A stretch of DNA of 64,000 bases from positions 124,001-188,000 of IMG/VR virus record IMGVR_UViG_3300042514_000542. One strand, given 5' to 3'. Shown here piece after piece: positions 1 through 61,912 of this stretch; within the stretch, counting starts at the first letter, position 1; every line of letters starts with the position of its first letter. The notes beneath the pieces were generated by a model. It was given only the letters and a program-made list of their open reading frames with translations. It did no database searches and was not told the origin of the DNA. A program made the position numbers and the translations under genes.

Positions 1-433
1 TTGGTGGTGGAAACGAGTAGTCATTAGTTTTCCAATCAAATATCAAACCACCAACACCATACTTATCTTTCGCACCTTTAAAAATTATAGGAGATAAAAA
101 TTTCAAAGCTGTCTCTTCCAAACTTTTTGCGTAACCCACTTCTGGTTCTTTTTTTGGAATTTCTCTACCCAATAATTCACTAATAGCTATTCCTTTCACT
201 GCCACGATACCAAATCCATCATCAGCTACTATATAATTAGCATTATGACCTATTTCACCATTTAATCCTACCCAATAATCAATAAACTTTTTAGCTTGTT
301 CTCTTGCGGTTGGACCACTATAAGTTTCAACCGTATCATCAGAATCCCCGCTATGATTTCTATAAGTAACCGTAATTTGTTCAGGTTTACTTAATTCTTG
401 ATTGTTTTCAAAAAATGTTTTAAATGTTATCAT
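1..433 (-). CDS. Hypothetical virion-internal protein with capsid-targeting-like N-terminus (partial, runs off window)
   Basis: Not in ORF track. Manual translation from ATG 433 gives MITFKTFFENNQELSKPEQ..., open to the window edge; TAAATA at 440-445, 6 nt upstream. Confidence 0.75.
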   Translation of the reverse strand, partial: MITFKTFFENNQELSKPEQITVTYRNHSGDSDDTVETYSGPTAREQAKKFIDYWVGLNGEIGHNANYIVADDGFGIVAVKGIAISELLGREIPKKEPEVGYAKSLEETALKFLSPIIFKGAKDKYGVGGLIFDWKTNDYSFPPP

Positions 434-442
434 TGCTGTTAT

Positions 443-2227
443 TTATCCAAATAGTCTCTCATATGCTCCCCACTGTTCATCCGTGAATGTTCTACTAGGA
501 TCTACGTGTGGCATACTACCACCAAGAAGATGCCAACCATCGGCTTGAAGTTGTGATATTTCATTCATTTGTTCAGTTTGTCCACCAAAAGCTATCGGTG
601 CTAGTCTCGATTGCTCAATTCTATGAACCTGTTCATTGGTATATATACTAGTAGCACTTTCGAAATACTGAATACCATAATCCAAGGGTGATATTTTGGA
701 TGGTTTACCACAGTTATCAAACTCTTCAATAGTGAACCATCTTTCACATAAATCTTTATCTAGAATCATCAATGCCCAAATCGTAGCCATGGTTCTGTCA
801 TCATGCTTACCGGAAACCGCACCCCAAGTATCATTTGGCAGTTTTACAAAGTCTTTAAAGATTTCCTCAAGGGATTGATCATTTCTAAAAACAACAACAC
901 CCCTATCGCTATAATAATAGCGAGCATTGGCACACGCATAGTATTTGGTGTTTCTGCTTGATATCATACCAAATAATTCCAAACTCTTTCTTCCAGCCAG
1001 TTTGGAACCCCAGTTAACTATCTTAGGGTATCCATAATCCATACCTAATCTATCAGCAACTTGACCACCTTGGTTATTTCTCTCAATACATACCAATGGA
1101 TTTCCCCAATGTTGTAATATCTCATATAACTTGTTGGAGAATTCTGCTACTGGAATTGTATTATCATAATATTCACCAACTTCAATGATTTCATTGAGAT
1201 CTGTAATATCTAATATCTTAATAACTGAATAGTCACCCCCAACACCCTCGGATACATCAACACCAGCGACATATAACTTATCTGGACTTGGTAATTCCCA
1301 TATCTTATACTTACCATCCATTAAAATCTCTACTGGTTCTCTAACTTCCTTTAATAAATTCTTATATAAAGTTTCATTTAAAGATGATGTTCCTGTATTA
1401 ATGAAAACACATTCATATTCCTGTTGCCACTTTTCTTCAGATGCAAGACCACTTTTAATTTTATCAGCCCATGTCTGGGTTCTACCTGGTACTTCATTCC
1501 ATAAAATTTTATCATGAACCCACCCATTCTTACCTTCCACTGCACCTGAATATAATGTATGGAAAAGATTACCCGTACCATTAGCAGTAGAACAAATGAA
1601 AACTTTTGATGTATTGGATGCTGAAACGATGGGGAATACAGATGCCCAGAATGGGTCCATTAAATGTTCTTCGATGAAAGCACACTCATCAATAACCAGT
1701 ATAGATACTGCCTGACCACGGGCAGCAGTTCCAGTTGTTGTTGAAATCTGAATTCTACTTCCATTTTCTAAATCCATTCCCGTCTTACCATAAGTTTCAG
1801 CGATTGGGGATTTTAACCAGTTTGGCATTAATTCATACGCCATTCTAATTCTACCAAAAATTTCAATAGCGGTTGCCTCTTTGTTAGCTACTAGAAGAAT
1901 ACGCTCATCGTTGAAGAATAATGCAACCCATAATAGATAGATTGTCATAAGGGTGGATTTACCGATCTGACGACTTGCTAAAAGAATAAAGAATCTATCA
2001 TTTCTCATCTTCTTCAAAATTCTCTTTTGAGCCTTATAAAGTTTAATTGTCTCTTTACCTTTACCGGGAATAAGAATGAAGAAATAATTTTCAGCGAAAT
2101 ATAAAATATCATTTTTACACTTCTCCATTTCCTTAACCATCTCAGGTGTGTATTCAAATTCAGCACCTCTAGCTGGGACATTTGGATTTCCCATGTAAAA
2201 TTTATCCTTTTTATCTCTATTTGCCAT
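443..2227 (-). CDS. 17: Terminase large subunit (T4 gp17-like)
   Basis: ASRQIGKS Walker A, ILVIDECAF Walker B, STANG, GVDVSEG and HDD nuclease motifs; start moved to ATG 2227 (MANRD), 8 nt after TAAATA. Confidence 0.95.
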   Translation of the reverse strand: MANRDKKDKFYMGNPNVPARGAEFEYTPEMVKEMEKCKNDILYFAENYFFILIPGKGKETIKLYKAQKRILKKMRNDRFFILLASRQIGKSTLMTIYLLWVALFFNDERILLVANKEATAIEIFGRIRMAYELMPNWLKSPIAETYGKTGMDLENGSRIQISTTTGTAARGQAVSILVIDECAFIEEHLMDPFWASVFPIVSASNTSKVFICSTANGTGNLFHTLYSGAVEGKNGWVHDKILWNEVPGRTQTWADKIKSGLASEEKWQQEYECVFINTGTSSLNETLYKNLLKEVREPVEILMDGKYKIWELPSPDKLYVAGVDVSEGVGGDYSVIKILDITDLNEIIEVGEYYDNTIPVAEFSNKLYEILQHWGNPLVCIERNNQGGQVADRLGMDYGYPKIVNWGSKLAGRKSLELFGMISSRNTKYYACANARYYYSDRGVVVFRNDQSLEEIFKDFVKLPNDTWGAVSGKHDDRTMATIWALMILDKDLCERWFTIEEFDNCGKPSKISPLDYGIQYFESATSIYTNEQVHRIEQSRLAPIAFGGQTEQMNEISQLQADGWHLLGGSMPHVDPSRTFTDEQWGAYERLFG

Positions 2228-2235
2228 ATCATATA

Positions 2236-2250
2236 TATTTACACTAAATA
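2236..2250. promoter_or_regulatory. Back-to-back divergent late promoters TATTTA-cac-TAAATA
   Basis: TAAATA on each strand, 8 and 7 nt before the ATGs at 2227 (-) and 2258 (+). Confidence 0.8.
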
Positions 2251-2257
2251 ACTGTAT

Positions 2258-3181
2258 ATGAGACACAACGATGCCGTAACTATTGGTGATATGTATGGGA
2301 AAATGTTAAATCCCTTGAGATATACACTAAAGGAATCAAATAAGAATGCATTTGGTAATCAACCAGAAATCGTTGGGGATGGTCCAAAAACCGATGGGTA
2401 TAATGAGGCACTTAATGATGAGATGCCCAAACCCACAAAACGTCAAGCTATTGTTAAAAAATTAGATTCTAAACTTAAAGATAGTAAATTGACTGATGCC
2501 CAAAAGAAAAAAATTAGAAAACATAGAGATGCAATGACTGCGGAAGAAGCAGAAGAGGAATTATTTGTTAAAGAAAATAGAAAAAATATTCGTGTAATGG
2601 TAAATAATAACATGAGCAAATCAGTGTTCGACAAACTATACAATAAAGTCCTTAAGGAAAACTTCGGCCAAGAAGATCAAGATATTGATGCCCTTGGGTT
2701 AGATGACTCAACACCAGACTCCGATTTTGGAGATGATTTTGGTGATGATGAATTTGGAGATGAAGGTGGAGACGAGGTTACATTCACACTTCCAAAAGAT
2801 GTAGCACAACAATTAATCGACGTTCTACAAGCATCCATTGGTGGTGAAGAAGAAGGTTTCGATGATGAAGGTGATGATCTAGATTTCGGTGACGAAGGTG
2901 GAGATGATGATCTAGATTTCGGTGGAGATGATGATGGAATGGACTTTGATGAAGATGAAGAAACTCAAGGAACCAAACCTGCTGTCGATAAAAAGAAAGC
3001 ATTCCAAGGAAAATCTAATAAGGTTTCTGGACCACCATCCCCAAAGAGTGGTAAGGCCAAGACTGATGTGACCGACGAATGTGGAACCAAAGATGGTGCG
3101 CCAAGCTTCTCAGCACTACAAGGTAAGAACAACCAAGTTCCCGGTTCAACCCTAAAGAAAGCTACTGATTACTTCCGTTAA
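2258..3181 (+). CDS. Acidic prohead core/scaffold-like protein, with probable second in-frame start at 2612
   Basis: D/E/G/F-rich low complexity (DDLDFG repeats), LKE/VKE sites, adjacent to terminase. Confidence 0.55.
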   Translation: MRHNDAVTIGDMYGKMLNPLRYTLKESNKNAFGNQPEIVGDGPKTDGYNEALNDEMPKPTKRQAIVKKLDSKLKDSKLTDAQKKKIRKHRDAMTAEEAEEELFVKENRKNIRVMVNNNMSKSVFDKLYNKVLKENFGQEDQDIDALGLDDSTPDSDFGDDFGDDEFGDEGGDEVTFTLPKDVAQQLIDVLQASIGGEEEGFDDEGDDLDFGDEGGDDDLDFGGDDDGMDFDEDEETQGTKPAVDKKKAFQGKSNKVSGPPSPKSGKAKTDVTDECGTKDGAPSFSALQGKNNQVPGSTLKKATDYFR

Positions 3182-3237: not shown

Positions 3238-3250
3238 GTTAAATAGTATT

Positions 3251-4063
3251 ATGATACCCTTCAAACAGTTTTTCTTAGAGAATTTCACCAACTCGATAGA
3301 TAATGAATACTTTGAAGCAATCCATAATGATGACTTATCCAAAGTTCAGAATATGGTAGATATAAAAGCCAAAAATATGGGGTATAATGTTAAAGCTTGG
3401 CATGGGACACCTATTGGAGAGTTCGACACCTTTAAATTGAGTAAATCCTTCGGATCTTTATATTTTTTTGCTAAGACCGAAGAATACGCAAAGTATTACG
3501 CCAATAGATTTAAAGGATCACCTAACCCGACAGTTATGGGAGTTTTTTTAAAAATCGAAAATCCGTTAAAGGTTGATAAATTTGAACCAGAGGGTGTTAA
3601 AACGGCATATGAGTTAAGGAAAAAAGGATACGATTCGGTAGAGACACCTAATGCATATATAGTATTTCTACCAGATCAAATAAAATCTGCAAACCCAATC
3701 ACCAAAAAGGGTGATAAAATCATCCCACTATCTAAAAGGTTTAATGTAGAATCTAATCTACTGTCTGAATATCGTCACAATCTTGCTGATGGAACACCAT
3801 CACAATCTATTCAAGCGCATAATGGTAAAGATCCCAACCGTCTAGATAAAAAGATTCTACACACTGTAGGTGATTATAAGAAAGAGAATCCTAAGATGAA
3901 TATTCCGGGTAGTGTTCTAACACCAATGGAATTAGCCGATATGGGAATCACATACGAACATGGTAAAATTTTTCAAAATGTTAAGAATAGTGGATTCGGA
4001 ATTGAGATGACCTCTATTAATGGCAAACCAATGGGTCGAGTATTCAAGTCTCGTATTAAATAA
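3251..4063 (+). CDS. Capsid-targeted protein with ADP-ribosyltransferase-like (ART-PolyVal type) domain
   Basis: MIPFKQFFLE N-terminus; AWHGT...LYFF...VFLKIENPL...KGYDSV...YIVFLPDQIKS pattern; TAAATA 5 nt before ATG 3251. Confidence 0.6.
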   Translation: MIPFKQFFLENFTNSIDNEYFEAIHNDDLSKVQNMVDIKAKNMGYNVKAWHGTPIGEFDTFKLSKSFGSLYFFAKTEEYAKYYANRFKGSPNPTVMGVFLKIENPLKVDKFEPEGVKTAYELRKKGYDSVETPNAYIVFLPDQIKSANPITKKGDKIIPLSKRFNVESNLLSEYRHNLADGTPSQSIQAHNGKDPNRLDKKILHTVGDYKKENPKMNIPGSVLTPMELADMGITYEHGKIFQNVKNSGFGIEMTSINGKPMGRVFKSRIK

Positions 4064-8694: not shown

Positions 8695-8707
8695 TATACT
8701 ATTTATG

Positions 8708-9198: not shown

Positions 9199-11151
9199 TT
9201 ATTTATAGTAAGAAAGAACTTCCATGGTATCAAGTTTAAAATCATCATCATCCCAGACTTTCTCGTTGATAAGTTTTTCAAACATTTTGTCGAAGGATTC
9301 CTTTACCTTAACCTTTGTCCCATCTATATCAGTTTTTATAGCCGCATATAATCGCATAAATGAATTATATCTATTACCTCCGCTAATATCCATCGGTTTA
9401 GGACTTGCAAGTACCAATATATGACGCATCTTAAATGATTCGGGTAAGCCTAATTCGTTGATAAGTTCTCTAATCAAATCTTTACTAAGTTTATTAATCC
9501 ATACATCTCTAACCTTTAATCCGGTTAATGATGGAACTATCTCCAACAGTCTCGGTGACTTAAATTTCGCAGCGACACTATCAAATAACTCATCACCCTT
9601 CATACCCTTAAACGCTAACAAATATTCACTTAAAGTATCCCAAACATCACTCTTACTTTCGTCATATTCCTTACTCTTCAATTGAATGGGTTTAGTGGAA
9701 ACCCCTTTAAATACATTAAGTATAATGGAGAATGGTAACTTCTCAAAATCTCTAACTGATGTTATATTAGCATTTCTGTCGAGTTGTAAACTCGTCACAT
9801 ATTCTCTATTATCATACGCTCTTTGGAATCTCTCAAGATATCCTATGAATGGGTTAATATTAGGATCTTCTGATGTTAAGCATAGAAGTTTATCAATTTT
9901 ATCATTGTTACTTGACGGCATACCAGACCAACTAATTTGAGAAAAATCTTTGACTGTTTTTTCTTTAGGAACTTGTAGGTCTTTGATTATACGCCTAGCT
10001 GAAGAATTAACCTCGTCTATAAATTGAATTTGTGTTTCTTTATCTACTTTTTCGTTAATCGCATTGATTTGATTTATATGGTCTTCAACATTTTTCAAAT
10101 CGTTTACAACATCTCGATATTTTTCTTCCATTACTTCAATCTCTTCAATCAAATCTAAGATTTTAGCCTTTTCTCGAACAATAGCCGAACTACTTAAATT
10201 AGCATTTGTGTGCTTATCTTCCAGATTAATCTTTCGTCTAACCGCAGATCTATATCGTTTAACTTCAGGTAATGCTTTTTCGTATTTTTTACTATTAATT
10301 TTCTTCGTTAGGGATGATATATTATCACTAATAGTGGATATATTACTATTCAAATTTTTTACTTTAGTTACATCCTTCGTTAAAAGAATTTCATGATTCA
10401 AATTCTTCAAAAGTTTTGTTTTGGTTTCAATTTCACGATACATGTCATATATATCAAAGAAATGTGTGTTTTTACTTTTCTTATTGTTATCCTCTATCGC
10501 CTTGACTCTCGCAGATATTTCAGCATATAATTCCCTAAGTTGATTGAATTTAGTTGGTGAGGAATTATACTTTTCATAATCGTTTACCCTGACACGATAA
10601 TGTCGCAGTCGAGTTTGTAATTCTGTGACCTCTTCAGCCCTTTTAACCTTCATGAAATTGAGATTGTCTAATTTCTTCTCATAATCATACGCTTCTTTGA
10701 CTTCTCTACCTCTAAAATCTTCAACGGTTCTAGATAGCCCATACGATGCCCTCTGTTTACCAAAACTTGTAGCAAGTTTGTTAAAATTTGTAATGAATGT
10801 TGGATCATTAGCCAATAACCCAAAGCTGGTTGTGAAACTTGCGTACATCATAGATCCAGCAGCAGCACCTATATCACCACGCTTTTTAATATCCAATTTA
10901 CCATCCTTTGAAATATTATATTCGTATGGATTGAATTCCCATCTAGAAATCGGAACAACCGCTTCAGGGTTATCATTTCTACCAACTGAACTCGATCCAA
11001 CCTTACCTACAAATTTACCATCTCCTGCATTCACCATCTGAGTTGGGTCTGACTCCATAGCATTATGGATTCTAGCACCACCCATATTCTTAGGGGCTGA
11101 TGGTCTAAATCCCGCTTCGGTGACTAAATTGAACAGTTTTTCGAACTTCAT
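9199..11151 (-). CDS. Large coiled-coil putative internal head protein
   Basis: MKFEKLFNLVTE N-terminus, central coiled coil, KESFDKMFEKLINE C-terminal motif; late promoter. Confidence 0.6.
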   Translation of the reverse strand: MKFEKLFNLVTEAGFRPSAPKNMGGARIHNAMESDPTQMVNAGDGKFVGKVGSSSVGRNDNPEAVVPISRWEFNPYEYNISKDGKLDIKKRGDIGAAAGSMMYASFTTSFGLLANDPTFITNFNKLATSFGKQRASYGLSRTVEDFRGREVKEAYDYEKKLDNLNFMKVKRAEEVTELQTRLRHYRVRVNDYEKYNSSPTKFNQLRELYAEISARVKAIEDNNKKSKNTHFFDIYDMYREIETKTKLLKNLNHEILLTKDVTKVKNLNSNISTISDNISSLTKKINSKKYEKALPEVKRYRSAVRRKINLEDKHTNANLSSSAIVREKAKILDLIEEIEVMEEKYRDVVNDLKNVEDHINQINAINEKVDKETQIQFIDEVNSSARRIIKDLQVPKEKTVKDFSQISWSGMPSSNNDKIDKLLCLTSEDPNINPFIGYLERFQRAYDNREYVTSLQLDRNANITSVRDFEKLPFSIILNVFKGVSTKPIQLKSKEYDESKSDVWDTLSEYLLAFKGMKGDELFDSVAAKFKSPRLLEIVPSLTGLKVRDVWINKLSKDLIRELINELGLPESFKMRHILVLASPKPMDISGGNRYNSFMRLYAAIKTDIDGTKVKVKESFDKMFEKLINEKVWDDDDFKLDTMEVLSYYK

Positions 11152-11156
11152 ATAGT

Positions 11157-11180
11157 TATTTATCTCTAAAATGTTAAATA
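11157..11180. promoter_or_regulatory. Divergent pair of late promoters
   Basis: TAAATA 5 nt before ATG 11151 (-) and 5 nt before ATG 11186 (+). Confidence 0.8.
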
Positions 11181-12860: not shown

Positions 12861-13163
12861 ATGAATAAACAAGATCAAATAAATATAGCGCAACTCTACG
12901 AAGAAGGGTTATGGGATAGGATGAAAGCATCGGCTTCCGGTGTATCTGCTGGAGTCAAAGGGTTCTTGGGTGGTAATGGTTATGCTAAATCGGCACAATC
13001 GGCAAAAAAATCCAGCTTAATGAGGGGTAAACTTTCATCAATATTGCAAGATATTCAAAAATTTGAAACTGACATGGGAAGATATAAAAATGATCCGTCT
13101 GCATCGACATTCTCACAAAAAACATCTCAAATTAAACAAATAATTAACAATTTCAATAAATAA
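12861..13163 (+). CDS. Small putative head protein
   Basis: MNKQDQINIAQLYEE-GLWDRMKA. Confidence 0.65.
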   Translation: MNKQDQINIAQLYEEGLWDRMKASASGVSAGVKGFLGGNGYAKSAQSAKKSSLMRGKLSSILQDIQKFETDMGRYKNDPSASTFSQKTSQIKQIINNFNK

Positions 13164-13167: not shown

Positions 13168-13821
13168 ATGTCAGCATACAATCGCAGCGATATGAAACTT
13201 CTTGAAGAAGCCTATAACCTTAGACTCCTTAAAGAACAAGCCCCACACATGACAATCAATGATGTAAAGAACCGTTTACATCTGATGAATGAATCAGAAC
13301 TGGAATATATTAACACTGTTAACGAAAGAATTCTTAATGAATTCTGGGGTGGACTTAAAAGTGTCGGTCAAGGAATTAAAAATGCTGGTGGTGCGGCTTT
13401 ACAAGCTGGTAAGAATGCTGGGAATGCTGCTCTACAGGCTGGAAAGGCTGCTGCTGGGAATGTAGCCAATGCTGCTTCTGCGGCTGGACAGGGCGCACTT
13501 GCCGCTGGCAAACAAGTCGTAGATAATGCTAAGGACATGTATAGTGCTGGTAATGTCGCATCACAATCCGATGAAGCAATTACTAAGGCTCAGACATCAA
13601 TGCAACAACTTATCGACCTTGTAACACAAGCACAAGCAAATGGTCTTATTAAGGCTCAAGGTGATGTTACAGACATGACATTAGCTGATATCATCGATGA
13701 ACTTACAACTGCACAACAATCAGCACAAACATTCAAGCAAGGGGCGCAAACTAAAGGATTTACTGGTGGTGCTGGACAAGCAGCTAAAGCTGCATATCAA
13801 GGAGCGAGACAACCAATTTAA
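13168..13821 (+). CDS. Ala/Gly/Gln-rich putative head protein
   Basis: KNAGxAALQAG repeats, ILNE-FWGGLK motif, TAAATA-N5-ATG. Confidence 0.65.
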   Translation: MSAYNRSDMKLLEEAYNLRLLKEQAPHMTINDVKNRLHLMNESELEYINTVNERILNEFWGGLKSVGQGIKNAGGAALQAGKNAGNAALQAGKAAAGNVANAASAAGQGALAAGKQVVDNAKDMYSAGNVASQSDEAITKAQTSMQQLIDLVTQAQANGLIKAQGDVTDMTLADIIDELTTAQQSAQTFKQGAQTKGFTGGAGQAAKAAYQGARQPI

Positions 13822-14735
13822 ACGTCCTCTAAATTCAACAAACATGCAAAGAAATTAATCTCTTTGTCATTAACACGGGTAGCTTTATCCAAATGGTCGG
13901 CAATGGTAATAATCATTGCCTTCTTTTTTGAATCATCTATGGATTGATCGTAAATATAATTCAATAGATCTACTAAAAGTTGCTCCCAATCAGAGTTGAA
14001 CTGTGCATCGTTTGCAATTAGATGCTTTCTAGTCTCCAAGGACTTCTTAGACACTACATTCTTGAAGACCATATCACATAATTGTGAATTGTTGATAGAT
14101 TCTCCAATAGTTAGAACTCCATTCACACAATGCTTCTGTAGTTCACCAATACACTTTCTTAAATCTGGAAATGATTGCTTAACTAGACGAATTACCTGTT
14201 TCTTCTGATCCTGATCAATTTCAACACCTTCAGACTTGAGAATGTTTAAACATCTAATGACTGTATCTCTCAATGTGGATCTTATGTCAAAACTTTGACA
14301 ACGAGATTGGACGGCAACACTAATTTTATGTCTTGAGTTACCAGTTAGAATGAATCTAGCTGAATTAGCATAAGATTCCATAAGATTTCTCAAACATTTT
14401 TGACCATCTATCGTCAAACCATCCGCTTCATCTAAAATGACAAGCTTCAAATTACCATCCAGACTTTTGGTTTGAACGAATCCGGTGACTTTGTTTCGGA
14501 TAGTATCGATACCATTCTCATCGGATGCATTGATATAAAGATAGTCACAATCCAATATAGTCTGAGCTAAAATTCTAGCTAATGTGGTTTTACCCGATCC
14601 GGGTTTACCTATAAATAATAAGTGAGGAATTTCATTACCCCAACTTAAAATTATCTCTCGTAATTCATCTGATATACAGAGATCATCAAGAGTCTGTGGG
14701 CGGTATTTTTCAATCCAAAGGTTGTCGTATCTCAT
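13818..14735 (-). CDS. 44: Clamp loader ATPase subunit (gp44/RFC small subunit-like)
   Basis: LWIEKYRPQ, GKPGSGKTT, INASDENG, ILDEAD, SRC. Confidence 0.95.
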   Translation of the reverse strand: MRYDNLWIEKYRPQTLDDLCISDELREIILSWGNEIPHLLFIGKPGSGKTTLARILAQTILDCDYLYINASDENGIDTIRNKVTGFVQTKSLDGNLKLVILDEADGLTIDGQKCLRNLMESYANSARFILTGNSRHKISVAVQSRCQSFDIRSTLRDTVIRCLNILKSEGVEIDQDQKKQVIRLVKQSFPDLRKCIGELQKHCVNGVLTIGESINNSQLCDMVFKNVVSKKSLETRKHLIANDAQFNSDWEQLLVDLLNYIYDQSIDDSKKKAMIITIADHLDKATRVNDKEINFFACLLNLEDV

Positions 14736-16546: not shown

Positions 16547-16621
16547 TTGTTGTATTTATACTCCACGCAAGAATATCAAGCATATAATTGTATAATGATG
16601 TTAAATCTCTAAATAATTAGG

Positions 16622-19294: not shown

Positions 19295-19785
19295 ATACAT
19301 ATACGATAAATTTATCCTCGAATTCATCCAATTATAGTCAAAAACTATCAACCACACATTTTGATGATATTTCGAAACTTGAAATAATCCCCCATAATCT
19401 TTTTAGTGGGTCAATTCCACTATATATAGTGATTGATTGGGGTGACGGTGTATCTGAGACTATAAATAATTCTATAGAATCTGATAGATTGGCTGCAACA
19501 GTGTCCACCACTCATGATATGTTTTATAAAACATATAGCCATGAATATTATCCATCGACTAATTCACTATACAAACAATTAAGCGCACAAATACTGGTCT
19601 TCTATATGAATGGTGAGTTTTCTTTTTTTGTAATACCTATTCAAATCAGAACATACGATTATTTCGAATCGATGTATGACATACATCTGAAACACACGAA
19701 TATTCTACCCCTTGAATACAATCCAAAGGAACATTATTTCTCAACTGAGAGAGATGGTTACTTAATAGAACTACGAGGTAATTAA
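19291..19785 (+). CDS. PKD-like structural protein
   Basis: IDWGDG motif; ATGA coupling. Confidence 0.6.
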   Translation: MNTYTINLSSNSSNYSQKLSTTHFDDISKLEIIPHNLFSGSIPLYIVIDWGDGVSETINNSIESDRLAATVSTTHDMFYKTYSHEYYPSTNSLYKQLSAQILVFYMNGEFSFFVIPIQIRTYDYFESMYDIHLKHTNILPLEYNPKEHYFSTERDGYLIELRGN

Positions 19786-19793
19786 ATAATATT

Positions 19794-23999: not shown

Positions 24000-24021
24000 A
24001 CAATCACGTTAAATAAACATA

Positions 24022-27452: not shown

Positions 27453-27551
27453 CACTTTCGGGATTTGTTCAAGGTATAACTAGTCAATCATTTTATAATA
27501 ATTTAATTCACTCTGATGCTTTCGTCACTAGACAAGCATTAAATAACAGAA

Positions 27552-28967: not shown

Positions 28968-28993
28968 AAGTCCCTATTGTAGTTCGGTTTTAA

Positions 28994-29876: not shown

Positions 29877-29913
29877 ACATATATTTAGTTGCCAATGACT
29901 AAATATATAAAGT

Positions 29914-32350: not shown

Positions 32351-32358
32351 GAAGATAT

Positions 32359-32865
32359 TTAACTATCAACTTCAACTTTACTAGTGTATTGATTATCTTC
32401 GGTTTTTTGAGGGACACCCTTCTCGATTAGAGTAGTGATAATGATTTCCATTGATTGTGTTTTAAGGGAATAGTTCTTAAACCTGTTACCACCATCATTA
32501 AATTCAAAGTGAACTTCACCCGGAGATTCTTTATTTACATAACATGTAATAATTAAACAATGACCACCTGGATCTACCATGATAGTCCATTTACGTGGAT
32601 CTGAAATTGGATAATCTTTAAATAAACGAATCGCAATGAATCCACTGTCCCTCAATCTATTTAAAAAATAGCCACCTGTTGTAATCGAATTTTTTTTCTT
32701 GTTCATTGGTTTAAATTTGTATTGGAAGTAGTCTTTAGTTATTCCCATCTTTTCATAATCTATTGTAAGTGATCTACCGGTGTAATCTGGTGCAGGTATG
32801 TCCACAGATATAAGTTCTGGAAACTCAAATGGTTGTTCTTGGTTTATATTGAATCCACTTAACAT
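32359..32865 (-). CDS. Hypothetical protein
   Basis: Starts 1 nt after the clamp stop codon. Confidence 0.6.
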   Translation of the reverse strand: MLSGFNINQEQPFEFPELISVDIPAPDYTGRSLTIDYEKMGITKDYFQYKFKPMNKKKNSITTGGYFLNRLRDSGFIAIRLFKDYPISDPRKWTIMVDPGGHCLIITCYVNKESPGEVHFEFNDGGNRFKNYSLKTQSMEIIITTLIEKGVPQKTEDNQYTSKVEVDS

Positions 32866-32866: not shown

Positions 32867-33583
32867 TTACTTACTAAGGCTGCTTAGGATATAATTTAGT
32901 TCAACATTACCATTTTTCAAGCTAATGCTACCGATTCCCATCTTATTAATTCTAAGAGTGAATACTTTTGAATCACCGAATGATAATAGACGAATGTTAT
33001 CAAGATTTAAAATGAATTCATCCATTTCAAAATCGACATCATCTCCTTCAATGGTTAGAACATCGGTGTTCATCATTGTTCTATCACCCAATGACCAATA
33101 TAACTTCTCATCTTCTGTAAAGATGTATAATTTATTAGTGTCTTTGAAAATTGAGGACTGTTTAATAACAGTGTCCAGAAAAGATTTACTTACATCGAAT
33201 TCATATTCGTATTGCAGACTCTCAATCTTTGAAAGAGTCAATTTAGGGGCGACCAAAATTCCATCACCATAAAGATGGTATTTGAATTTGATTTTCTTAC
33301 CTTTATATTCTAAATTATTTGAATTTAGAATGAACTCTACCTCCTTATCTGGTATAAGATCCAAGGACTTGGATAACTTCTTAACAGATGGTAGATTTAA
33401 AACTTGTGGATCATCATAATCACTGTCTAACGTAGACCATAGAAACATGCTTCGATCTTCGGATGAAGAGATTGCATATATTCTATCTGTTTCTACATTG
33501 AGGATCGAGGAATCACTTACTTTGGACAATCCTTCGAGAAAATTCTTAAAATCGTCCTTATTAAACTTAATTGTTTTTTGCAT
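32867..33583 (-). CDS. 45: Sliding clamp (gp45/PCNA-like)
   Basis: 238 aa acidic protein with duplicated clamp-like helix/strand pattern, in the replication block. Confidence 0.7.
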   Translation of the reverse strand: MQKTIKFNKDDFKNFLEGLSKVSDSSILNVETDRIYAISSSEDRSMFLWSTLDSDYDDPQVLNLPSVKKLSKSLDLIPDKEVEFILNSNNLEYKGKKIKFKYHLYGDGILVAPKLTLSKIESLQYEYEFDVSKSFLDTVIKQSSIFKDTNKLYIFTEDEKLYWSLGDRTMMNTDVLTIEGDDVDFEMDEFILNLDNIRLLSFGDSKVFTLRINKMGIGSISLKNGNVELNYILSSLSK

Positions 33584-35770: not shown

Positions 35771-36410
35771 TTATATATTTAATCAAATTATTAGAAATTT
35801 TTGTTTTTGCTTGTTTTGCAAATTCTTTCATCTTTTTGGATGTGTAGAACTTGTTTTTTGTTTGTTGAAACACCAAGTAAAAATCAGGGAATATGAATTC
35901 CAATATTTCTGATTCTATCTGGGGTTTTTTGAAAGTCAATGCCTGAAGCGTGTAATAATTGATCTTGTGATCTTTTAAATGTTGCACGAAACATGGCATT
36001 GTTCCTTCTATATTTAGTTCATAATCAGATAATTGCAAAGACTGCTCCTTACAATATTTCGCTACAAACTTAAGACTTTCTGCCAGTCTTCTAAGGCTAT
36101 CGGAAGAGTCTGGATCTTGTAATTCCAGTTGCTTCATATAATCACTATAACACTTAATTGCTTTAGGTTTAGTGTAAAAATCCAGAGGATAGTAATCATC
36201 ATCTGAATAAATTTTGTGGGGGGCTAAAAAGAAATCTTCTTGAATGAGATTGGGATATGAATTGAAAAGTCTGGATAGTTTTTGAAGAACCATCACTTGA
36301 TCTTCATCAAGTTTAGAAAAATCCTTTTTGAGTTTGAATGGTTCATTCTTAGCCTTTCTTGAAGCAACCAAATGGTTGTTATAGATCTGCTTTTCAAATT
36401 CAGTTATCAT
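35727..36410 (-). CDS. Probable helicase loader (gp59-like)
   Basis: Size, basic helical composition, T4 synteny 59-seg-32, KINYYTLQAL segment. Confidence 0.45.
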   Translation of the reverse strand: MITEFEKQIYNNHLVASRKAKNEPFKLKKDFSKLDEDQVMVLQKLSRLFNSYPNLIQEDFFLAPHKIYSDDDYYPLDFYTKPKAIKCYSDYMKQLELQDPDSSDSLRRLAESLKFVAKYCKEQSLQLSDYELNIEGTMPCFVQHLKDHKINYYTLQALTFKKPQIESEILEFIFPDFYLVFQQTKNKFYTSKKMKEFAKQAKTKISNNLIKYINESNNGNTKEGGNI

Positions 36411-37517: not shown

Positions 37518-37598
37518 GTATATATTTAGTAATCCGAGTCGTTTCTTCTTCAATTAAATTTGTTAATAGGTCAATAAGATCTGATGACGGGTCGTAAT

Positions 37599-40861: not shown

Positions 40862-40899
40862 ACAGTATCACAGATAAATCCACAGTCAACAGATAAATA
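40862..40899. promoter_or_regulatory. Divergent early (-) and late (+) promoters
   Basis: TTGACT-N16-TACTGT-N5-ATG on -; TAAATA-N5-ATG on +. Confidence 0.75.
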
Positions 40900-48719: not shown

Positions 48720-48747
48720 AGAATATCACCACCAAGCAGGATGTCAA
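48720..48747 (-). promoter_or_regulatory. Sigma70-type early promoter of the DNA polymerase gene
   Basis: TTGACA-N16-TATTCT, 9 nt before ATG. Confidence 0.8.
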
Positions 48748-48989: not shown

Positions 48990-49021
48990 AACATTATTTA
49001 TTCCACTTTTTCAAATAATGT

Positions 49022-49195: not shown

Positions 49196-49206
49196 AATGA
49201 TATTTA

Positions 49207-53702: not shown

Positions 53703-53967
53703 GTTTCCAATTTCGATCTAAAAATTTAGACATCTCAGCTAATGCAGGTTTGAATAAATTATTATATGAATAATCCGAGTAGTTAGCGCATTTATATTCG
53801 AATACATCTTCAGAATATCCATTAAGATGGCATCGGATAATCCACTTACCATCTTCATATCTACCATCTATTTTATCAACTCTCCTATGTTTCATATTAG
53901 TCATAACATCCGTCCTCTGAATCATGTTCCAACATCGGTCTAACATAAACCGACCCTTGTGATGCAT
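53695..53967 (-). CDS. Hypothetical protein (true start probably near 53900)
   Basis: Fills the gap between gp55 and gp47. Confidence 0.5.
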   Translation of the reverse strand: MHHKGRFMLDRCWNMIQRTDVMTNMKHRRVDKIDGRYEDGKWIIRCHLNGYSEDVFEYKCANYSDYSYNNLFKPALAEMSKFLDRNWKHD

Positions 53968-54343
53968 CGCTCATTTCATTTTCATAAACCATCTGTTTAT
54001 ATTCTTCCAGACCTTCGTGTTGTCTATTCTCTTTCTTGATACGATTGGAAAATGCATTCCATGCAATCTGATTGAAGTATGAGAATGGATTGAATTCTGA
54101 TTCAATCTTAAATTTCTTATCTTCCAATGCTGAATACATCTTCAAAATGGCATCACCCACCATCTCATCTTTCCATGTGTAATTGATAAACCTATAATTA
54201 TAACTAAGACCTTCAGCAATCTTAACTATGTTCAAGGCTAGTTCATTCGACATTACATCATCCTCGTAGTATTTCTCCAATTGCTGGCGAAATAGTTTTG
54301 ATGACACATAATACTTCTCTTTAACGTCTTTATTTGTTATCAT
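53897..54343 (-). CDS. 55: Late transcription sigma factor (gp55)
   Basis: KIAEGLS...FINYTWKDEMVGDA, NPFSYFNQIAWNAF..RIKKE. Confidence 0.93.
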   Translation of the reverse strand: MITNKDVKEKYYVSSKLFRQQLEKYYEDDVMSNELALNIVKIAEGLSYNYRFINYTWKDEMVGDAILKMYSALEDKKFKIESEFNPFSYFNQIAWNAFSNRIKKENRQHEGLEEYKQMVYENEMSDASQGSVYVRPMLEHDSEDGCYD

Positions 54344-55081: not shown

Positions 55082-56530
55082 TTATTTAGATGAAAGGTTT
55101 AGTTCAGTCTCCTTCCACGGTATCTGTTCGTCGTCATAAAATGTCTTTCTAAGATCTGCATGTTCAGTGGATGATTTCATATTATCATACAAATCGAAAA
55201 TTGTAAGTAAATCTTTACTATGATGTAATCTTAATCCACGACCGATTGACTGAACTATTCGAACGAATGATTTACCATTACCAGCGAACATGACATAATG
55301 TAAATTCTTAACATTGATACCAGTTGAGAAAATGGATGCCATGGCAACACATACGATATTATCCTGCGATTCCATTCTCTCGATTATAGCCATTCTCTCT
55401 AATACGGGCATCGCACCACTAACAAAATAAAATTCCTTGTCGTCAAATTTTAGATGTTCTGATAAATGCTCACCATGTTCCAGTCTATTGACTAGTATAA
55501 GAATATTCTTATTCAATTTAGATACTATTTTTCGTATGGTATTATTACGAGTCTCATCAGTATGAATAAATTCCAATTCTTTCTTATATCCTCTTGGTGG
55601 ATGTTTATGGATTAGTTTTATAACTCTGATCGTAGCATGGGCTAAAAACTTAGCATCCCTAAGTTCCTTTGAATTTTTCTCGTATATAATCGGACCGAAT
55701 GTTCCTATGATTTTCCACACATCAATTTTCTCTTTCGGTAAAGTTCCAGTAAACCCGAACTTGTTGGGAGTTTTTATCTTGGATAGGATTTTTGTCATCA
55801 CATTTCCAAGTTTGGTCTGGTGACACTCATCCCTCAATACCAGATCGACATCCAATAAATTTGTAAAGTTCCCGAATTGGGAACACAAACATTCAGTATT
55901 GACTATAATGACTTCCGTATCCGTTAAAGGTAACTTATAATTTCCCTTGGTATCAGTCTCGCCTGTCCATCCAGAGAAAGTAAACGAAACTTCGTATTCC
56001 TTAAAGTCATTCAACAACTGATGAACCAATCCTGTGCCGGGAACAACGAGTAAACATTTCACATTCCCTTTGATTTTTTTCCAATTCTCGATAAGAGATG
56101 CTTGAATCAAAGACTTACCACCACCTGTTGCCACCACAACAGTCCCACGACCCACTTTTAGGCAAGTTTCAACTGTTTCCACCTGATAGTCCCTCAAAGG
56201 ATACTTAAGCCCGTCAAATAGCTCATAGTCCTTAAAACCGCACATCAGACATTCCTTAAAATTATCTGTATAAGTTATTTCTGATATAGATTCGGATATA
56301 AGAAATTTTCGAATATCAACAAACAATCCAAAATCAAATAATCCACTGGCTTGAATAGCATACTTTCTATCAGGAATTTTGGATTTCTTACCAAGACTCT
56401 TAGCTTTATGATTTACAAAAGAGGCAGATGCATCCTTTTCTGAGAAATGGTTACGAACAAACGTCAAGATTGAATCATCACAGATCAATCTTCCTTTTCT
56501 ATAGGATTTGTCGTAGTCGAATGTGATCAT
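55082..56530 (-). CDS. uvsW: SF2 DNA helicase
   Basis: LRDYQ, ATGGGKS, DECH, GFTGT, STGIN, QSIGRGLR. Confidence 0.93.
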   Translation of the reverse strand: MITFDYDKSYRKGRLICDDSILTFVRNHFSEKDASASFVNHKAKSLGKKSKIPDRKYAIQASGLFDFGLFVDIRKFLISESISEITYTDNFKECLMCGFKDYELFDGLKYPLRDYQVETVETCLKVGRGTVVVATGGGKSLIQASLIENWKKIKGNVKCLLVVPGTGLVHQLLNDFKEYEVSFTFSGWTGETDTKGNYKLPLTDTEVIIVNTECLCSQFGNFTNLLDVDLVLRDECHQTKLGNVMTKILSKIKTPNKFGFTGTLPKEKIDVWKIIGTFGPIIYEKNSKELRDAKFLAHATIRVIKLIHKHPPRGYKKELEFIHTDETRNNTIRKIVSKLNKNILILVNRLEHGEHLSEHLKFDDKEFYFVSGAMPVLERMAIIERMESQDNIVCVAMASIFSTGINVKNLHYVMFAGNGKSFVRIVQSIGRGLRLHHSKDLLTIFDLYDNMKSSTEHADLRKTFYDDEQIPWKETELNLSSK

Positions 56531-56932: not shown

Positions 56933-56960
56933 AGTATAAATACATATATGAGATTGTCAA
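56933..56960. promoter_or_regulatory. Overlapping divergent early (-) and late (+) promoters
   Basis: TTGACA-N16-TATACT on - overlaps TATAAATA (56935-56942) on +. Confidence 0.75.
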
Positions 56961-57882: not shown

Positions 57883-58373
57883 TTTTCATAAAAGAGTATA
57901 ACGGTGTTGTTTTTGAAGACTTGGAATCCGTTTTTAAAAAAACCAATATAGATTTTTACAATTATATAACAGAAATGGGTATAGAAATAGATCTTTCCAA
58001 AAAGGATCAACAAAAAATATATCTACATCATTTTATAATTTATCTATGTAATGTTTTAAAGACCCATAATGATAAAATAATATTCCATATTAATTCATTT
58101 AATATTTGCGATATTCAGAAAAAAATAATTAAAAAGATTAAGAGAATATTTGGAATACGCATATGGGTGTCTCCCTATACTATTGATACGTTTTTGGAAA
58201 ATTTGAAGAATCGTGATGTTACCATAACGGATTCTTTCGAATTATACTTAAACATCAAATCTAAACCAAAATCATTTAGACATATTAAAAAATATTTAGA
58301 TAAGGAAGGCTTTACCAGTCTTTCAGATAGTTATTTCCAAGACATAGCAAACAAAATGGTTATTCTTTGTTAA
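57879..58373 (+). CDS. Hypothetical protein
   Basis: 164 aa ORF after early promoter. Confidence 0.7.
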   Translation: MIFIKEYNGVVFEDLESVFKKTNIDFYNYITEMGIEIDLSKKDQQKIYLHHFIIYLCNVLKTHNDKIIFHINSFNICDIQKKIIKKIKRIFGIRIWVSPYTIDTFLENLKNRDVTITDSFELYLNIKSKPKSFRHIKKYLDKEGFTSLSDSYFQDIANKMVILC

Positions 58374-58382
58374 ATAATCAAT

Positions 58383-59197: not shown

Positions 59198-59222
59198 CCT
59201 AAACATTTTAATAAATAATACT

Positions 59223-59898: not shown

Positions 59899-59901
59899 TG
59901 A

Positions 59902-60342
59902 ATGAGAAGTTTCAAGCAATATTTTGTAGAGAAAACCGTTTTAGGTTTGGAAGAAACTATCTACGTTGATGGTGTTGGACAACTACGTGCGAAATTAGAC
60001 ACGGGAAATGGAGCGTTTAATGTTCTACATGGACAGAAAATTCAAATAGATGGTGATATGGTTAGGTTCACCACTGAAAATGGTGTGGTATTAGAGAAAC
60101 CTATTTCAGATCATATAACAATTAACTTGGGTGCTGGTAATACCGAAGATCGTCCAGTGGTATTATTAAATATAAAAATGGGTGATAAGATTTTCAAGGA
60201 TATCCCATTCTCAATCGGAAACAGATCACAAAATACCCATAAAGTTTTAATTGGTAAGAGCTTCATACAAAATGAATTAGATGCATTAATTGATGTGGGT
60301 CTTGTAGATGTAGCTAAAAGAAATATAGAAGTTAATATATGA
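59902..60342 (+). CDS. Retropepsin-like (RimK-associated type) aspartic peptidase with capsid-targeting-like N-terminus
   Basis: AKLDTG, EDRPVV, FSIGNRS, VLIG; MRSFKQYFVE. Confidence 0.8.
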   Translation: MRSFKQYFVEKTVLGLEETIYVDGVGQLRAKLDTGNGAFNVLHGQKIQIDGDMVRFTTENGVVLEKPISDHITINLGAGNTEDRPVVLLNIKMGDKIFKDIPFSIGNRSQNTHKVLIGKSFIQNELDALIDVGLVDVAKRNIEVNI

Positions 60343-60839
60343 AAAAGTTTACTCAAAAAGAATTGTTGAATGAGGGGTTTTGGGACAGTTTTCCAGCTAG
60401 AGTTCTTAAGGGTGCTGCTGTTGTTGGTAAATTTGCGACTAAGACACTCGCACCTGAAATATACAACCCTATCTCCAGTGTGGTGTCGGGAATTAAAGAT
60501 CTAAATCAACAATTGATTAAAGCTACCACACCAGAGGCTTCATATATAATAAATAAATTGGCGAATCAAGGATATTCAATAGTTGGTGATATTGGTAAGA
60601 TTAAAATGAGACAAGGGGATGATAAACAATTGTATAAAGTATCAGTTGTAATAAGACAAAATTTTATCAGTTCTGGAGAACCCAATCCTCAAAAAATATT
60701 CTTAGTGGACAAAGATGGTAATATAGTAAGAGATTTAAGTGCTAAAAACGCCGCAAAGGGTGGGAAAAAACCACAAAAACAAAGAGTTTCACCAGTTGTA
60801 ACAAATCCACAAACCAAAAAAGTTCCACCGAAACCTTGA
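60339..60839 (+). CDS. Putative head/internal protein
   Basis: LLNE-GFWDS motif. Confidence 0.65.
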   Translation: MKKFTQKELLNEGFWDSFPARVLKGAAVVGKFATKTLAPEIYNPISSVVSGIKDLNQQLIKATTPEASYIINKLANQGYSIVGDIGKIKMRQGDDKQLYKVSVVIRQNFISSGEPNPQKIFLVDKDGNIVRDLSAKNAAKGGKKPQKQRVSPVVTNPQTKKVPPKP

Positions 60840-60873
60840 CATAATAGACCTGTCTGATATTGTTCTAGTTGTT

Positions 60874-61122
60874 ATGAACAAAATTGAAGCTAAAAAGTTT
60901 GGTGAAGTGTATGTTGCTACCGATGGTGAGAGATCTGCAATTGGTAAGACCGAGGAAGACGCAATTAAAGCTATTGAGGATATGCAAGCACTAGCACAGG
61001 CCGCTATTGATGAGCAAACATCTAAGAGCAATGCCGCCCCCCTAGAAAATTCTAAGGAGGGACATCCGTTCGATCCATTTGGTGGAACTTCTTGGTCTGG
61101 AAAACGTAATAGTTTTGACTAA
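60874..61122 (+). CDS. Small hypothetical early protein
   Basis: After TTGACA-N16-TATTGT (60836-60863). Confidence 0.65.
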   Translation: MNKIEAKKFGEVYVATDGERSAIGKTEEDAIKAIEDMQALAQAAIDEQTSKSNAAPLENSKEGHPFDPFGGTSWSGKRNSFD

Positions 61123-61856
61123 ACGCCCAAAACTTGGGTGATATGTTTGAGCAACGGTGATCTAACAATATCTGTCACATCAAATTCGACACAATGGATG
61201 TTATTTTTTCTTGAAAACTCTGTATCGAATAAATCGAAGACATCCGAGAAACCTGAATCTCTAATATCCTTTTGCTTACCATCACCACAAATAATATATT
61301 TGGTTCCTCTACCAAATCTTGTTAAGATTGTGGTTAATTCAGATCTGGTGGCATTTTGAGCTTCATCAAATATGACAATAGAATTGTTGAATGTTAAACC
61401 ACGGGCAAAGTTAACAGGTATAGCTTTGATATATTCCTGTTCAATCATAGCATTGTAAGATGCTTTATCAGTGGTTTCCAAACATTTTTCATTTAGAACC
61501 ATTGTATATGCTGCAAACTTTTCGTTTTCATCACCCTTTAGATATCCCATAGAACGGGAAGCACTCTCAATGACAGTTCTGATATAAATGATCTTATCAG
61601 CCTTACGTTCCTTTAACATTTCCAAGGCAGAAAACACGGCACAATATGATTTTGCGGAACCTGCTGGTCCATCTAGAAGAACCATATTCGTCTTATCATT
61701 TTTCACCAAATCTATAAAAGATTTTTGACGATCTGTTAGGGGAAATTGCTTTTTAATAGTTATATTAGAACAATCAAAGTTCTGTTTATAGTTTTTATTG
61801 AATTCATCGGTTATATCCACTTCCTTCCTCTTGCGAGGTGCGCTTTTCTTTTGCAT
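61119..61856 (-). CDS. phoH: PhoH-family ATPase
   Basis: GPAGSAKS, GYLKG, RGLTF, DEAQN, TRFG, GDGKQKD, DIVRS. Confidence 0.93.
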   Translation of the reverse strand: MQKKSAPRKRKEVDITDEFNKNYKQNFDCSNITIKKQFPLTDRQKSFIDLVKNDKTNMVLLDGPAGSAKSYCAVFSALEMLKERKADKIIYIRTVIESASRSMGYLKGDENEKFAAYTMVLNEKCLETTDKASYNAMIEQEYIKAIPVNFARGLTFNNSIVIFDEAQNATRSELTTILTRFGRGTKYIICGDGKQKDIRDSGFSDVFDLFDTEFSRKNNIHCVEFDVTDIVRSPLLKHITQVLGV

Positions 61857-61863
61857 TCATTAT

Positions 61864-61912
61864 TATTTAATATATTTTAGTGAATTGACAAATTAAAAAT
61901 AAATGTTAAATT
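61864..61912. promoter_or_regulatory. Divergent late (-) and early (+) promoters
   Basis: TAAATA-N7-ATG for phoH; TTGACA-N16-TAAATT-N6-ATG for the kinase. Confidence 0.75.

Follow-up and report, generated by a model that had tools for sequence, protein, structure and literature searches.

Do the late genes of a T4-like phage need a leader between promoter and start codon? The question is raised by a 64,000-nucleotide stretch (here, the window; positions 124,001 to 188,000 of IMG/VR record IMGVR_UViG_3300042514_000542) of the 206.6-kb genome of an uncultured lake-water relative of phage T4. In the window, the hexamer TAAATA, the 6-bp core of the T4 late box (TATAAATA), was seen 5-8 nt before 29 start codons, with late mRNAs predicted to start at or next to the AUG. 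The observation held in full, as all 29 hexamers are present on one or the other strand, each followed by an ATG or GTG that opens an ORF of at least 57 codons or one running off the window edge. The spacing is N5 in 17, N6 in 8, N7 in 2 and N8 in 2 cases. The sites are the following:

440..445, minus strand: TAAATA box, N6, ATG at 433; the gene runs off the left window edge (243 aa in genome coordinates).
2236..2241, minus strand: TAAATA box, N8, ATG at 2227, terminase large subunit TerL (443-2227); the spacing is N8-N12 in all relatives.
2245..2250, plus strand: TAAATA box, N7, ATG at 2258 (307 aa), back to back with the TerL box, with 30 bp between the two start codons.
2601..2606, plus strand: TAAATA box, N5, ATG at 2612.
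3240..3245, plus strand: TAAATA box, N5, ATG at 3251 (270 aa).
4057..4062, plus strand: TAAATA box, N6, ATG at 4069, head-closure (Hc2-like) protein; the box is kept in 9 of 10 relatives.
8700..8705, minus strand: TAAATA box, N5, GTG at 8694, baseplate wedge (gp6-like); the GTG start and the box are conserved in relatives.
9200..9205, minus strand: TATAAATA box, N6, GTG at 9193, baseplate wedge (gp25/53-like).
11157..11180, divergent pair of TAAATA boxes: 11157-11162 (minus, N5, ATG 11151, 650 aa) and 11175-11180 (plus, N5, ATG 11186, 185 aa), with only 34 bp between the two start codons.
13157..13162, plus strand: TAAATA box, N5, ATG at 13168 (217 aa).
16553..16615, divergent pair: 16553-16558 (minus, N6, ATG 16546, 71 aa) and 16610-16615 (plus, N6, ATG 16622, 890 aa).
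19783..19788, plus strand: TAAATA box, N5, GTG at 19794 (789 aa).
24010..24015, plus strand: TAAATA box, N6, ATG at 24022 (273 aa).
27540..27545, plus strand: TAAATA box, N6, ATG at 27552 (115 aa, Ser-rich N-terminus).
29882..29905, divergent pair: 29882-29887 (minus, N5, ATG 29876, 125 aa) and 29900-29905 (plus, N8, ATG 29914, 146 aa).
32356..32361, minus strand: TAAATA box, N5, ATG at 32350 (100 aa).
35776..35781, minus strand: TAAATA box, N5, ATG at 35770, GIY-YIG homing endonuclease.
37523..37528, minus strand: TAAATA box, N5, ATG at 37517, GIY-YIG homing endonuclease.
40894..40899, plus strand: TAAATA box, N5, ATG at 40905 (663 aa).
48995..49000, minus strand: TAAATA box, N5, ATG at 48989 (81 aa).
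49201..49206, minus strand: TAAATA box, N5, ATG at 49195 (57 aa).
55083..55088, minus strand: TAAATA box, N5, ATG at 55077, GIY-YIG homing endonuclease.
56937..56942, plus strand: TATAAATA box, N5, ATG at 56948 (82 aa).
58371..58376, plus strand: TAAATA box, N6, ATG at 58383 (146 aa).
59212..59217, plus strand: TAAATA box, N5, ATG at 59223 (132 aa).
61864..61869, minus strand: TAAATA box, N7, ATG at 61856, PhoH-like protein.

Because the genome is 65% A+T and the starts had been picked by eye, the pattern could be a by-product of composition and of choosing start codons to fit the motif. Positional enrichment against the A/T-rich background, which had been set as a test beforehand, refuted this explanation. 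In a motif-blind comparison of all 4096 hexamers over the whole genome, TAAATA ranks first for being followed at N5/N6 by an ATG/GTG opening an ORF of 60 or more codons, with 65 of 287 copies (22.6%) against 0.93% overall, a 24-fold enrichment. The spacing peak is sharp, with 50 copies at N5, 15 at N6, and 6 or fewer at any other spacing from 0 to 30, and TAAATANNNNNATG occurs 47 times against 5 for the reversed control. Of the 80 motif starts, 55 are the first start codon of their ORF, protein alignments with relatives begin at residue 1, and distant A/T-rich T4-like contigs show no such sites. TAAATA as such is under-represented, with 90 copies against 131 +/- 11 in window shuffles, and 287 against 397 under a Markov-1 expectation for the genome; outside starts it is depleted on both strands.

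The motif behaves as an all-or-none hexamer, with 47 exact copies against 7 one-mismatch copies at N5. The full 8-bp TATAAATA box is not what is conserved, since only 9 copies occur in the window, no more than chance, and three of them lie at starts (9200, 16553, 56937). At motif genes, position -12 of the T4 numbering is unconstrained, although T4 gp55 flips A-12, and -13 is a purine in 81%. As in T4, there is no -35 element (the logo is flat from -30 to -14) and the segment that follows the box is A/T-rich (84% A+T), matching the melted segment described for T4.

The geometry places the start codon at the predicted transcription start. In T4 numbering TATAAATA covers -13 to -6, the flipped adenines are -12, -9 and -8, and the P23 template reads TATAAATA-CTCCT-G(+1); TAAATA-N5 therefore puts the A of ATG at +1. 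A pyrimidine is found at -1 in 88% of the late-box genes at N5, against 56% of other genes, and a purine is always found at +1. An alternative is that TAAATA is the late promoter but that transcripts carry leaders of a few nt, or are extended by slippage on the A/T-rich initial region, so that translation would not be strictly leaderless. In favor of this, 15 of 80 sites are N6 and several are N7-N8, TerL has its longer spacing in relatives as well, start-site choice by RNA polymerase can move by 1-2 nt, and the T4 numbering rests on one promoter, P23. However, N5 dominates in this genome and in 14 relatives, the pyrimidine at -1 and purine at +1 flank exactly the start codon, an independent sigma70-type class is offset by exactly one base (see below), and leaders of 1-3 nt behave as leaderless in the systems that have been studied; this alternative is considered unlikely.

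The box precedes virion genes and homing endonucleases and no replication gene. The genes that carry it include prohead protease, TerL, head closure, two baseplate wedge proteins, tape measure, three tail-tube paralogues, sheath and three homing endonucleases. The box is present in 11 of 12 annotated virion genes but in only 1 of 17 replication and nucleotide-metabolism genes (Fisher p = 4e-6). The genome also encodes several of the protein parts of the T4 system:

53897..54343, minus strand: gp55-family late sigma factor (148 aa), next to gp47/gp46-like SbcD/SbcC genes, as in T4.
32867..33583, minus strand: sliding clamp (gp45/PCNA fold, 238 aa), the likely activator of late transcription by analogy with T4.
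13818..14735, minus strand: clamp loader large subunit (gp44-like).

The gp55 homologue matches phrog_234 (E 1.7e-26) and T4 gp55 in PDB 7D7C_F (E 1.3e-9, residues 33-119 aligned to 41-125). L54, F86, Y97, E70 and D74 are conserved; however, three of the six T4 pocket residues covered by the alignment are replaced (R57, H95, T99), and N13 lies outside it. The clamp was identified by its ESM Atlas structure (TM 0.80-0.86 to gp45/PCNA clusters) with weak PCNA sequence hits, whereas the Pfam gp45 models did not hit, and the clamp loader matches phrog_168 (E 1.3e-72). No PHROG hit to the gp33 co-activator, which is short and poorly conserved, was found among the small ORFs of the window.

No gene class in this genome shows enrichment of Shine-Dalgarno (SD) sites. 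The SD core was found in 3.2% of motif genes and 6.0-7.9% of all or other genes, against a background of 5.7-6.7% (6.0% against 5.7% genome-wide), compared with 47% against 7% in T4 by the same method. The original prediction that the box leaves no room for an SD site is true but not specific.

The lack of SD sites allows another possibility, that TAAATA is a translation signal on leadered, polycistronic mRNAs, an A/U-rich non-SD ribosome-binding or re-initiation element with promoters lying elsewhere. Bacteroidota use an A-rich motif a few nt before starts (GeneMarkS-2 group B, PMC6028130), in 16 of 62 motif genes the box overlaps the upstream stop codon (predicted to be frequent), and terminator-like sites are not enriched between genes. 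However, the group B motif is degenerate and precedes nearly all genes, including operon-internal ones, while TAAATA is exact, precedes only about a quarter of genes, which form a functional class (virion genes), and is avoided elsewhere. It also equals the core of the gp55 box in a genome that encodes gp55, and two sequence-unrelated -10-type motifs show the same geometry, each with the offset expected for its own recognition mode. The host uses TTGACA -35 elements, unlike Bacteroidota. Furthermore, eight divergent gene pairs have a box on each side, five of them 28-53 bp apart, the other three being the TerL/2258 pair (30 bp), the 29876/29914 pair (37 bp) and the 16546/16622 pair (75 bp), so that seven are 53 bp or less, leaving little or no room for leadered promoters. 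The translation-signal reading is thus improbable.

The start-abutting design is not specific to late genes, as two further promoter classes of the same genome share it. One is a 64-copy AAAACCGAAnTAnAAT-N6-ATG motif, with a pyrimidine at -1 in 94% of cases, and the other is TTGACA-N16-18-TAnnnT. The sigma70-type class uses TAnAAT-N6, one base more than the late box, as expected for a hexamer at -12..-7. In the window these classes are represented by:

28976..28991, minus strand: the single window copy of the 64-copy class (AAAACCGAACTACAAT), N8, ATG at 28967 (76 aa).
48720..48747, minus strand: an example of the third class, TTGACA-N16-TATTCT, N9, ATG at 48710 (DNA polymerase); similar sites lie before the clamp loader (14775), the RmlD-like gene (16407), primase (31886), the UvsY-like gene (56960), the 57879 gene and dTMP kinase (61885).

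The late design is clade-wide. Fourteen related IMG/VR contigs show 108 copies at N5 and 29 at N6, and orthologous genes keep the box while flanking bases vary. In T4 the box lies 14-28 nt from starts, and in distant T4-like contigs 23-38 nt. The RNA data found were short metatranscriptome contigs, which cover only the capsid gene of relatives.

Here it is proposed, with a probability of roughly 0.75, that TAAATA is the -10-like element of the late promoters of this phage, corresponding to positions -11 to -6 of the T4 box, and that it is read by host RNA polymerase carrying the gp55-family sigma factor, probably assisted by the sliding clamp by analogy with T4. Because five (sometimes six) A/T-rich bases separate the box from the start codon, transcription would begin at the A or G of the start codon, or one base before it, and the late mRNAs would be leaderless, translated by direct binding of ribosomes and initiator tRNA to a 5'-terminal AUG or GUG, without an SD site. 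The motif, its spacing, its gene set, its conservation and the presence of the protein parts were established by the analysis, whereas the position of the transcription start, the dependence on gp55 and the mode of translation are inferred from sequence alone. About 16% of the starts are GTG, which is a poor leaderless start in E. coli. Leaderless or near-leaderless expression looks like the default for this phage clade and, by implication, for its host.

The interpretation first offered is only partly supported. Leaderless late expression is well supported in silico, but the proposal that each gene is a self-contained cassette is overstated, as only about 14 of 23 genes (about 60%) in the late modules of the window, and 62-80 of about 294 genes genome-wide, carry their own box, and the rest must be co-transcribed. 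The most abundant late gene, that of the major capsid protein, has its box 61 nt upstream, followed by a hairpin-containing leader, and the spacing of TerL means a short leader. About 40% of genes have no adjacent promoter and must be translated internally without SD, so the host clearly has another SD-independent route. The proposed link between such cassettes and the scrambled orientation of the structural genes is plausible, but remains a hypothesis.

T4-type late transcription relies on the TATAAATA box, gp55, gp33 and the gp45 clamp, starts about 6 nt after the box, depends on gp55 and on replication, and likewise controls virion genes and GIY-YIG homing endonuclease genes; the present phage differs in conserving only 6 of the 8 box positions, in the distance of the box from the start codon and in the lack of SD use. 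Cellular leaderless genes with a -10 element (TANNNT) adjacent to the ORF are found in Deinococcus-Thermus and Actinobacteria (GeneMarkS-2 group C; PMC12340547, PMC6028130, PMC3160421). They share a -10-type element at a fixed few nt before the start codon, no SD and predominantly AUG starts, but there the housekeeping sigma reads TANNNT and leadered genes still use SD, while here an exact hexamer would be read by a phage gp55-type factor, three promoter classes share the design and SD is absent altogether. Middle/late transcripts of the Thermus phages phiYS40 and P23-45 are reportedly largely leaderless (Sevostyanova et al. 2007), from promoters also lacking -35 elements. These phages belong to an unrelated lineage, their promoters are read by host sigma A with phage-encoded modifiers instead of a gp55-family factor, and their host phylum is already known to be rich in leaderless genes.

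A broader reading, slightly more likely than not, is that a whole clade of uncultured, mostly lake-water T4-like phages of about 200 kb has abolished 5' untranslated regions and SD sites as a general rule. In this view all three temporal promoter classes (a 64-copy 22-bp early-type promoter, canonical TTGACA/TAnnnT promoters and the gp55-type TAAATA box) are fused to the start codon, each at the offset its own recognition mode requires, and expression would run on 5'-terminal AUG/GUG mRNAs, possibly helped by phage-encoded initiator-like tRNAs. This would be the first gp55-dependent leaderless regulon and would point to an abundant freshwater host that translates leaderless mRNA by default. 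T4 late transcription is a textbook system, and its promoters have always been described with leaders and ribosome-binding sites; a natural lineage that fuses the gp55 box to the start codon would show that the minimal late promoter can be as small as six base pairs, that a 14-bp unit can carry both the transcription and the translation start, and that large virulent phages can run essentially their whole programme on leaderless mRNA. The design also gives a clue to the translation biology of an apparently common freshwater host.

In practical terms, gene callers that expect a ribosome-binding site will misplace starts in such genomes, while the exact spacing gives a cheap way to call late genes and true start codons in metagenomic phage contigs. 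The site at 2601 is an in-frame internal start of the 2258-3181 gene, either an internal late start or chance, and two similar internal sites, missed by the original prediction, are found at 23587 and 60167.

The 206,590-bp IMG/VR viral record, of which the window covers bases 124001-188000, is rated as complete by CheckV, has 35% G+C and was assembled from lake-water metagenomes. It encodes a T4-type major capsid protein (Pfam Gp23, E 2.5e-85, genome 6914-8365), as well as TerL, baseplate wedge proteins, sheath, tube, and gp43-, gp41-, gp61-, gp32-, UvsX-, UvsY-, gp46/47- and gp44-like proteins. A megablast search of 12 kb against GenBank phages found no match, and the nearest cultured phages share only about 30% identity in the DNA polymerase and capsid proteins, placing this genome in a deep, uncultured branch of the T4-like phages. 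Rfam gave no hit in the window. Attempts to identify the host from sequence gave no assignment, as the RmlA-like gene had hits in all phyla at about 50% identity and no WhiB was found.

The original prediction listed 29 TAAATA hexamers, each 5-8 nt before a start codon, and this observation held. All 29 hexamers are present, and each is followed by ATG or GTG opening a real ORF, at N5 in 17 cases, N6 in 8, N7 in 2 and N8 in 2. To avoid choosing starts to fit the motif, all 4096 hexamers were tested genome-wide for being followed at N5 or N6 by ATG/GTG opening an ORF of at least 60 codons, and TAAATA ranked first, with 65 of 287 copies (22.6%) against 0.93% overall. The spacing profile is a spike, with 50 copies at N5, 15 at N6, and 6 or fewer at any other spacing, while the reversed pattern gave 5 matches against 47. 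In 55 of 80 cases the motif start is the first start codon of its ORF. These controls exclude chance as an explanation. Outside these sites the hexamer is avoided, with 90 copies against 131 +/- 11 in window shuffles and 287 against 397 expected in the genome; once the roughly 95 start-linked copies are removed, the rest is about half of expectation, on both strands. At N5 there are 47 exact copies but only 7 with one mismatch, the signal therefore being an exact recognition site and not an A/T-rich patch.

Genes with the box include the prohead protease, TerL, a head-closure protein, two baseplate wedge proteins, a tape-measure-like protein, three tail-tube paralogues, the sheath and three GIY-YIG homing endonucleases. 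Sixteen of the 17 annotated DNA- and nucleotide-metabolism genes lack it (Fisher p = 4e-6), including DNA polymerase, primase, helicases, SSB, UvsX/Y, SbcCD, clamp loader, RNR, dTMP kinase and the late sigma gene itself; one nucleotide-sugar epimerase carries it. This is the T4 late pattern, including late-promoter-driven seg-type endonucleases. The three endonuclease genes are paralogous and lie inside the replication module (window 35012-35770, 36669-37517 and 54340-55077, all on the minus strand), each with its own TAAATA-N5-ATG box as with T4 seg genes, whereas a fourth GIY-YIG-like gene (57439-57882, plus strand) has no box. TAAATA-N5-ATG/GTG sites were also found inside genes and in frame with them on the plus strand, at window 2601 (in 2258-3181), 23587 (in 22233-23999) and 60167 (in 59902-60342), and these may be internal late starts giving shorter products, as for T4 genes 17 and 21, or chance.

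The following components of a T4-type late transcription machinery are encoded in the window:
53897-54343, minus strand, a 148-aa gp55-family protein (phrog_234, E 1.7e-26), which aligns directly to T4 gp55 of PDB 7D7C (E 1.3e-9) and lies next to gp47/gp46-like genes, as in T4.
32867-33583, minus strand, a sliding clamp (ESM Atlas structure, TM 0.80-0.86 to gp45/PCNA clusters).
13818-14735, minus strand, the clamp loader.

The Pfam gp45 models PF02916 and PF09116 gave no hit, and a single-sequence AlphaFold model of the clamp candidate had a pLDDT of 34 and was discarded, the assignment being settled by the ESM Atlas comparison. No gp33 was recognized among the small ORFs of the window. A second, shorter gp55 paralogue (114 aa, 37% identical to the gp55 of the window and lacking the C-terminal tail) lies just after a tRNA gene outside the window, at genome 24657-25001 on the plus strand (locus L117:4657-4998); it is absent from the complete relative G001, and is not, therefore, a clade feature.

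The cryo-EM study of the T4 late complex states that gp55 flips the adenines at -12, -9 and -8, and its P23 template reads TATAAATA, then CTCCT, then G. The T4 box therefore spans -13 to -6, with five bases between it and +1, and TAAATA-N5-ATG thus puts the A of the start codon at +1. Four independent features agree with this. The base before the start codon is a pyrimidine in 88% of N5 genes, against 56% of genes without a motif (p = 4e-5), and the start base is always a purine. The five spacer bases are 84% A+T, like the melted segment described for T4, and nothing is conserved around -35. Finally, a second, sequence-unrelated promoter class of the same genome uses TAnAAT-N6-ATG, one base more, which is exactly what a sigma70-type hexamer at -12..-7 needs to start at the same A. 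However, a late promoter with short leaders instead of none cannot be excluded for the N6-N8 sites.

Eight divergent gene pairs carry a box on each side. Five lie 28-53 bp apart, including the 11151/11186 pair of the window (34 bp), and the other three are the TerL/2258 pair (30 bp), the 29876/29914 pair (37 bp) and the 16546/16622 pair (75 bp). A leadered promoter for either gene would have to lie inside the other gene. Intrinsic terminator-like sites and generic sigma70 consensus matches are not enriched in the late region.

Fourteen IMG/VR contigs whose TerL is 70-86% identical all keep the design, with 108 boxes at N5, 29 at N6 and 10 at N7. Three large relatives gave 43, 19 and 40 matches to TAAATANNNNNATG, against 4, 1 and 4 for the control. 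Orthologous genes keep the box at the same spacing while the flanking bases vary, and two baseplate genes keep a GTG start. In contrast, eight more distant T4-like contigs (TerL 29-38% identical, similar G+C) show at most one such site, a single TAAATA-N5 start in contig L028, and in them TATAAATA lies 23-38 nt before starts; in T4 it lies 14-28 nt before starts. The Shine-Dalgarno (SD) core was found upstream of 47% of T4 ORFs (7% background) and of 49-53% of ORFs in two of the distant groups, while in this genome the figure is 6.0% (5.7% background) and in the close relatives 6.7% (8.7% background). One distant group, contigs L027 and L028 (30-31% G+C), also lacks SD enrichment (9.3% against 7.1% background), and only one of their 97 TAAATA copies lies at N5/N6 from a start. 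As the 23-38 nt spacing was measured only for the eight distant contigs pooled, leaders in these two are likely but not shown separately. Loss of SD and loss of leaders therefore look like separate events among T4-like phages, and loss of SD alone would not produce this design.

The start-abutting design is not specific to late genes. A 22-bp promoter-like motif, TTAATTAAAACCGAAnTAnAAT (the AAAACCGAAnTAnAAT promoter), occurs 64 times (0 for the control), at genome 21-30 kb on the plus strand and mostly at 48-110 kb on the minus strand in front of small ORFs, with one copy in the window (28976-28991, minus strand), and it occurs 52 times in G001 (211.7 kb). In 37 cases the ATG follows at exactly N6, always with a pyrimidine before it, and one copy ends 5 nt before tRNA-Asp (genome 28714). 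The motif includes a conserved -28..-13 part. The possibility that the second gp55 paralogue drives this class was considered, but it is weakened because G001 has 52 copies of the promoter and only one gp55 gene. In addition, TTGACA-N16-18-TAnnnT occurs 35 times genome-wide, against 10 for permuted controls, and in 46% of cases an ORF start follows within 4-14 nt, against 5.9% for controls. In the window, such TTGACA/TTGACT promoters lie 5-14 nt before the start codons of replication and nucleotide-metabolism genes (14775, 16407, 31886, 48747 and 56960 on the minus strand; 57845, 60836 and 61885 on the plus strand), including DNA polymerase, clamp loader and dTMP kinase, with a TTGACT variant preceding primase. 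This suggests short or absent leaders for these genes too, and a host with ordinary sigma70 -35 recognition, the canonical -35 elements arguing against a Bacteroidota member. A translational A-rich element of the Bacteroidota type, as an alternative reading of TAAATA, is contradicted by its restriction to one functional class, the exactness of the hexamer, its avoidance elsewhere, the match to the gp55 box, and the parallel geometry of these two other -10-type motifs.

There are also exceptions to the design. The major capsid gene, outside the window, has its TAAATA 61 nt upstream (genome 6847-6852; the region to the ATG is genome 6847-6913, locus L009:2248-2314), followed by a short GC-rich hairpin with a GCAA loop and a purine-rich run before the ATG. 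Twenty metatranscriptome runs contain 5-13% of the words of the capsid region, and four of them yielded only short contigs, at 90-99% identity over the capsid gene of relatives, with no pile-ups of ends and nothing over the start-adjacent boxes. One contig from a relative reaches 45 nt upstream of its ATG, thus covering at least 45 nt of this leader, and ends 11 nt downstream of the +1 predicted for the distal box, which is compatible with the model but weak and not decisive. TerL (window 2227-2258 and the orthologous sites in loci L010-L016) keeps N8-N12 in every relative, while its divergent neighbor keeps N5-N7, and this may be a built-in way to lower TerL expression. About 40% of genes have no adjacent promoter and must be translated from internal positions without SD. 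Within the late modules of the window, about 14 of 23 genes have their own box, and the proposal in the original prediction that every gene is a self-contained cassette is therefore too strong; its interpretation is thus supported only in part.

Leaderless genes with a -10 element next to the ORF are established in Deinococcus-Thermus and Actinobacteria, and leaderless mRNAs also occur in Thermus phages. Full-text literature searches found no description of gp55-type late promoters fused to start codons, or of a T4-like phage without leaders. The design itself is well supported by sequence evidence, whereas transcription from the start codon is inferred from the geometry and not from mapped 5' ends.

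Outside the window, 23 tRNA genes were found at genome 21470-32161 and 55502-56048. Two tRNA-Met genes have a C1xA72 mismatch (initiator-like), which could favor leaderless initiation, and one tRNA has a CUA anticodon (amber suppressor type). TAG is the rarest stop codon (18 of 294 genes). Sugar-nucleotide genes are also encoded at window 14732-16371 (minus strand) and genome 110882-111856, comprising a glucose-1-phosphate nucleotidyltransferase-like protein, an RmlD/epimerase-like protein and a second epimerase, plus a glycosyltransferase at window 49207-50415, and they may serve DNA or surface glycan modification.
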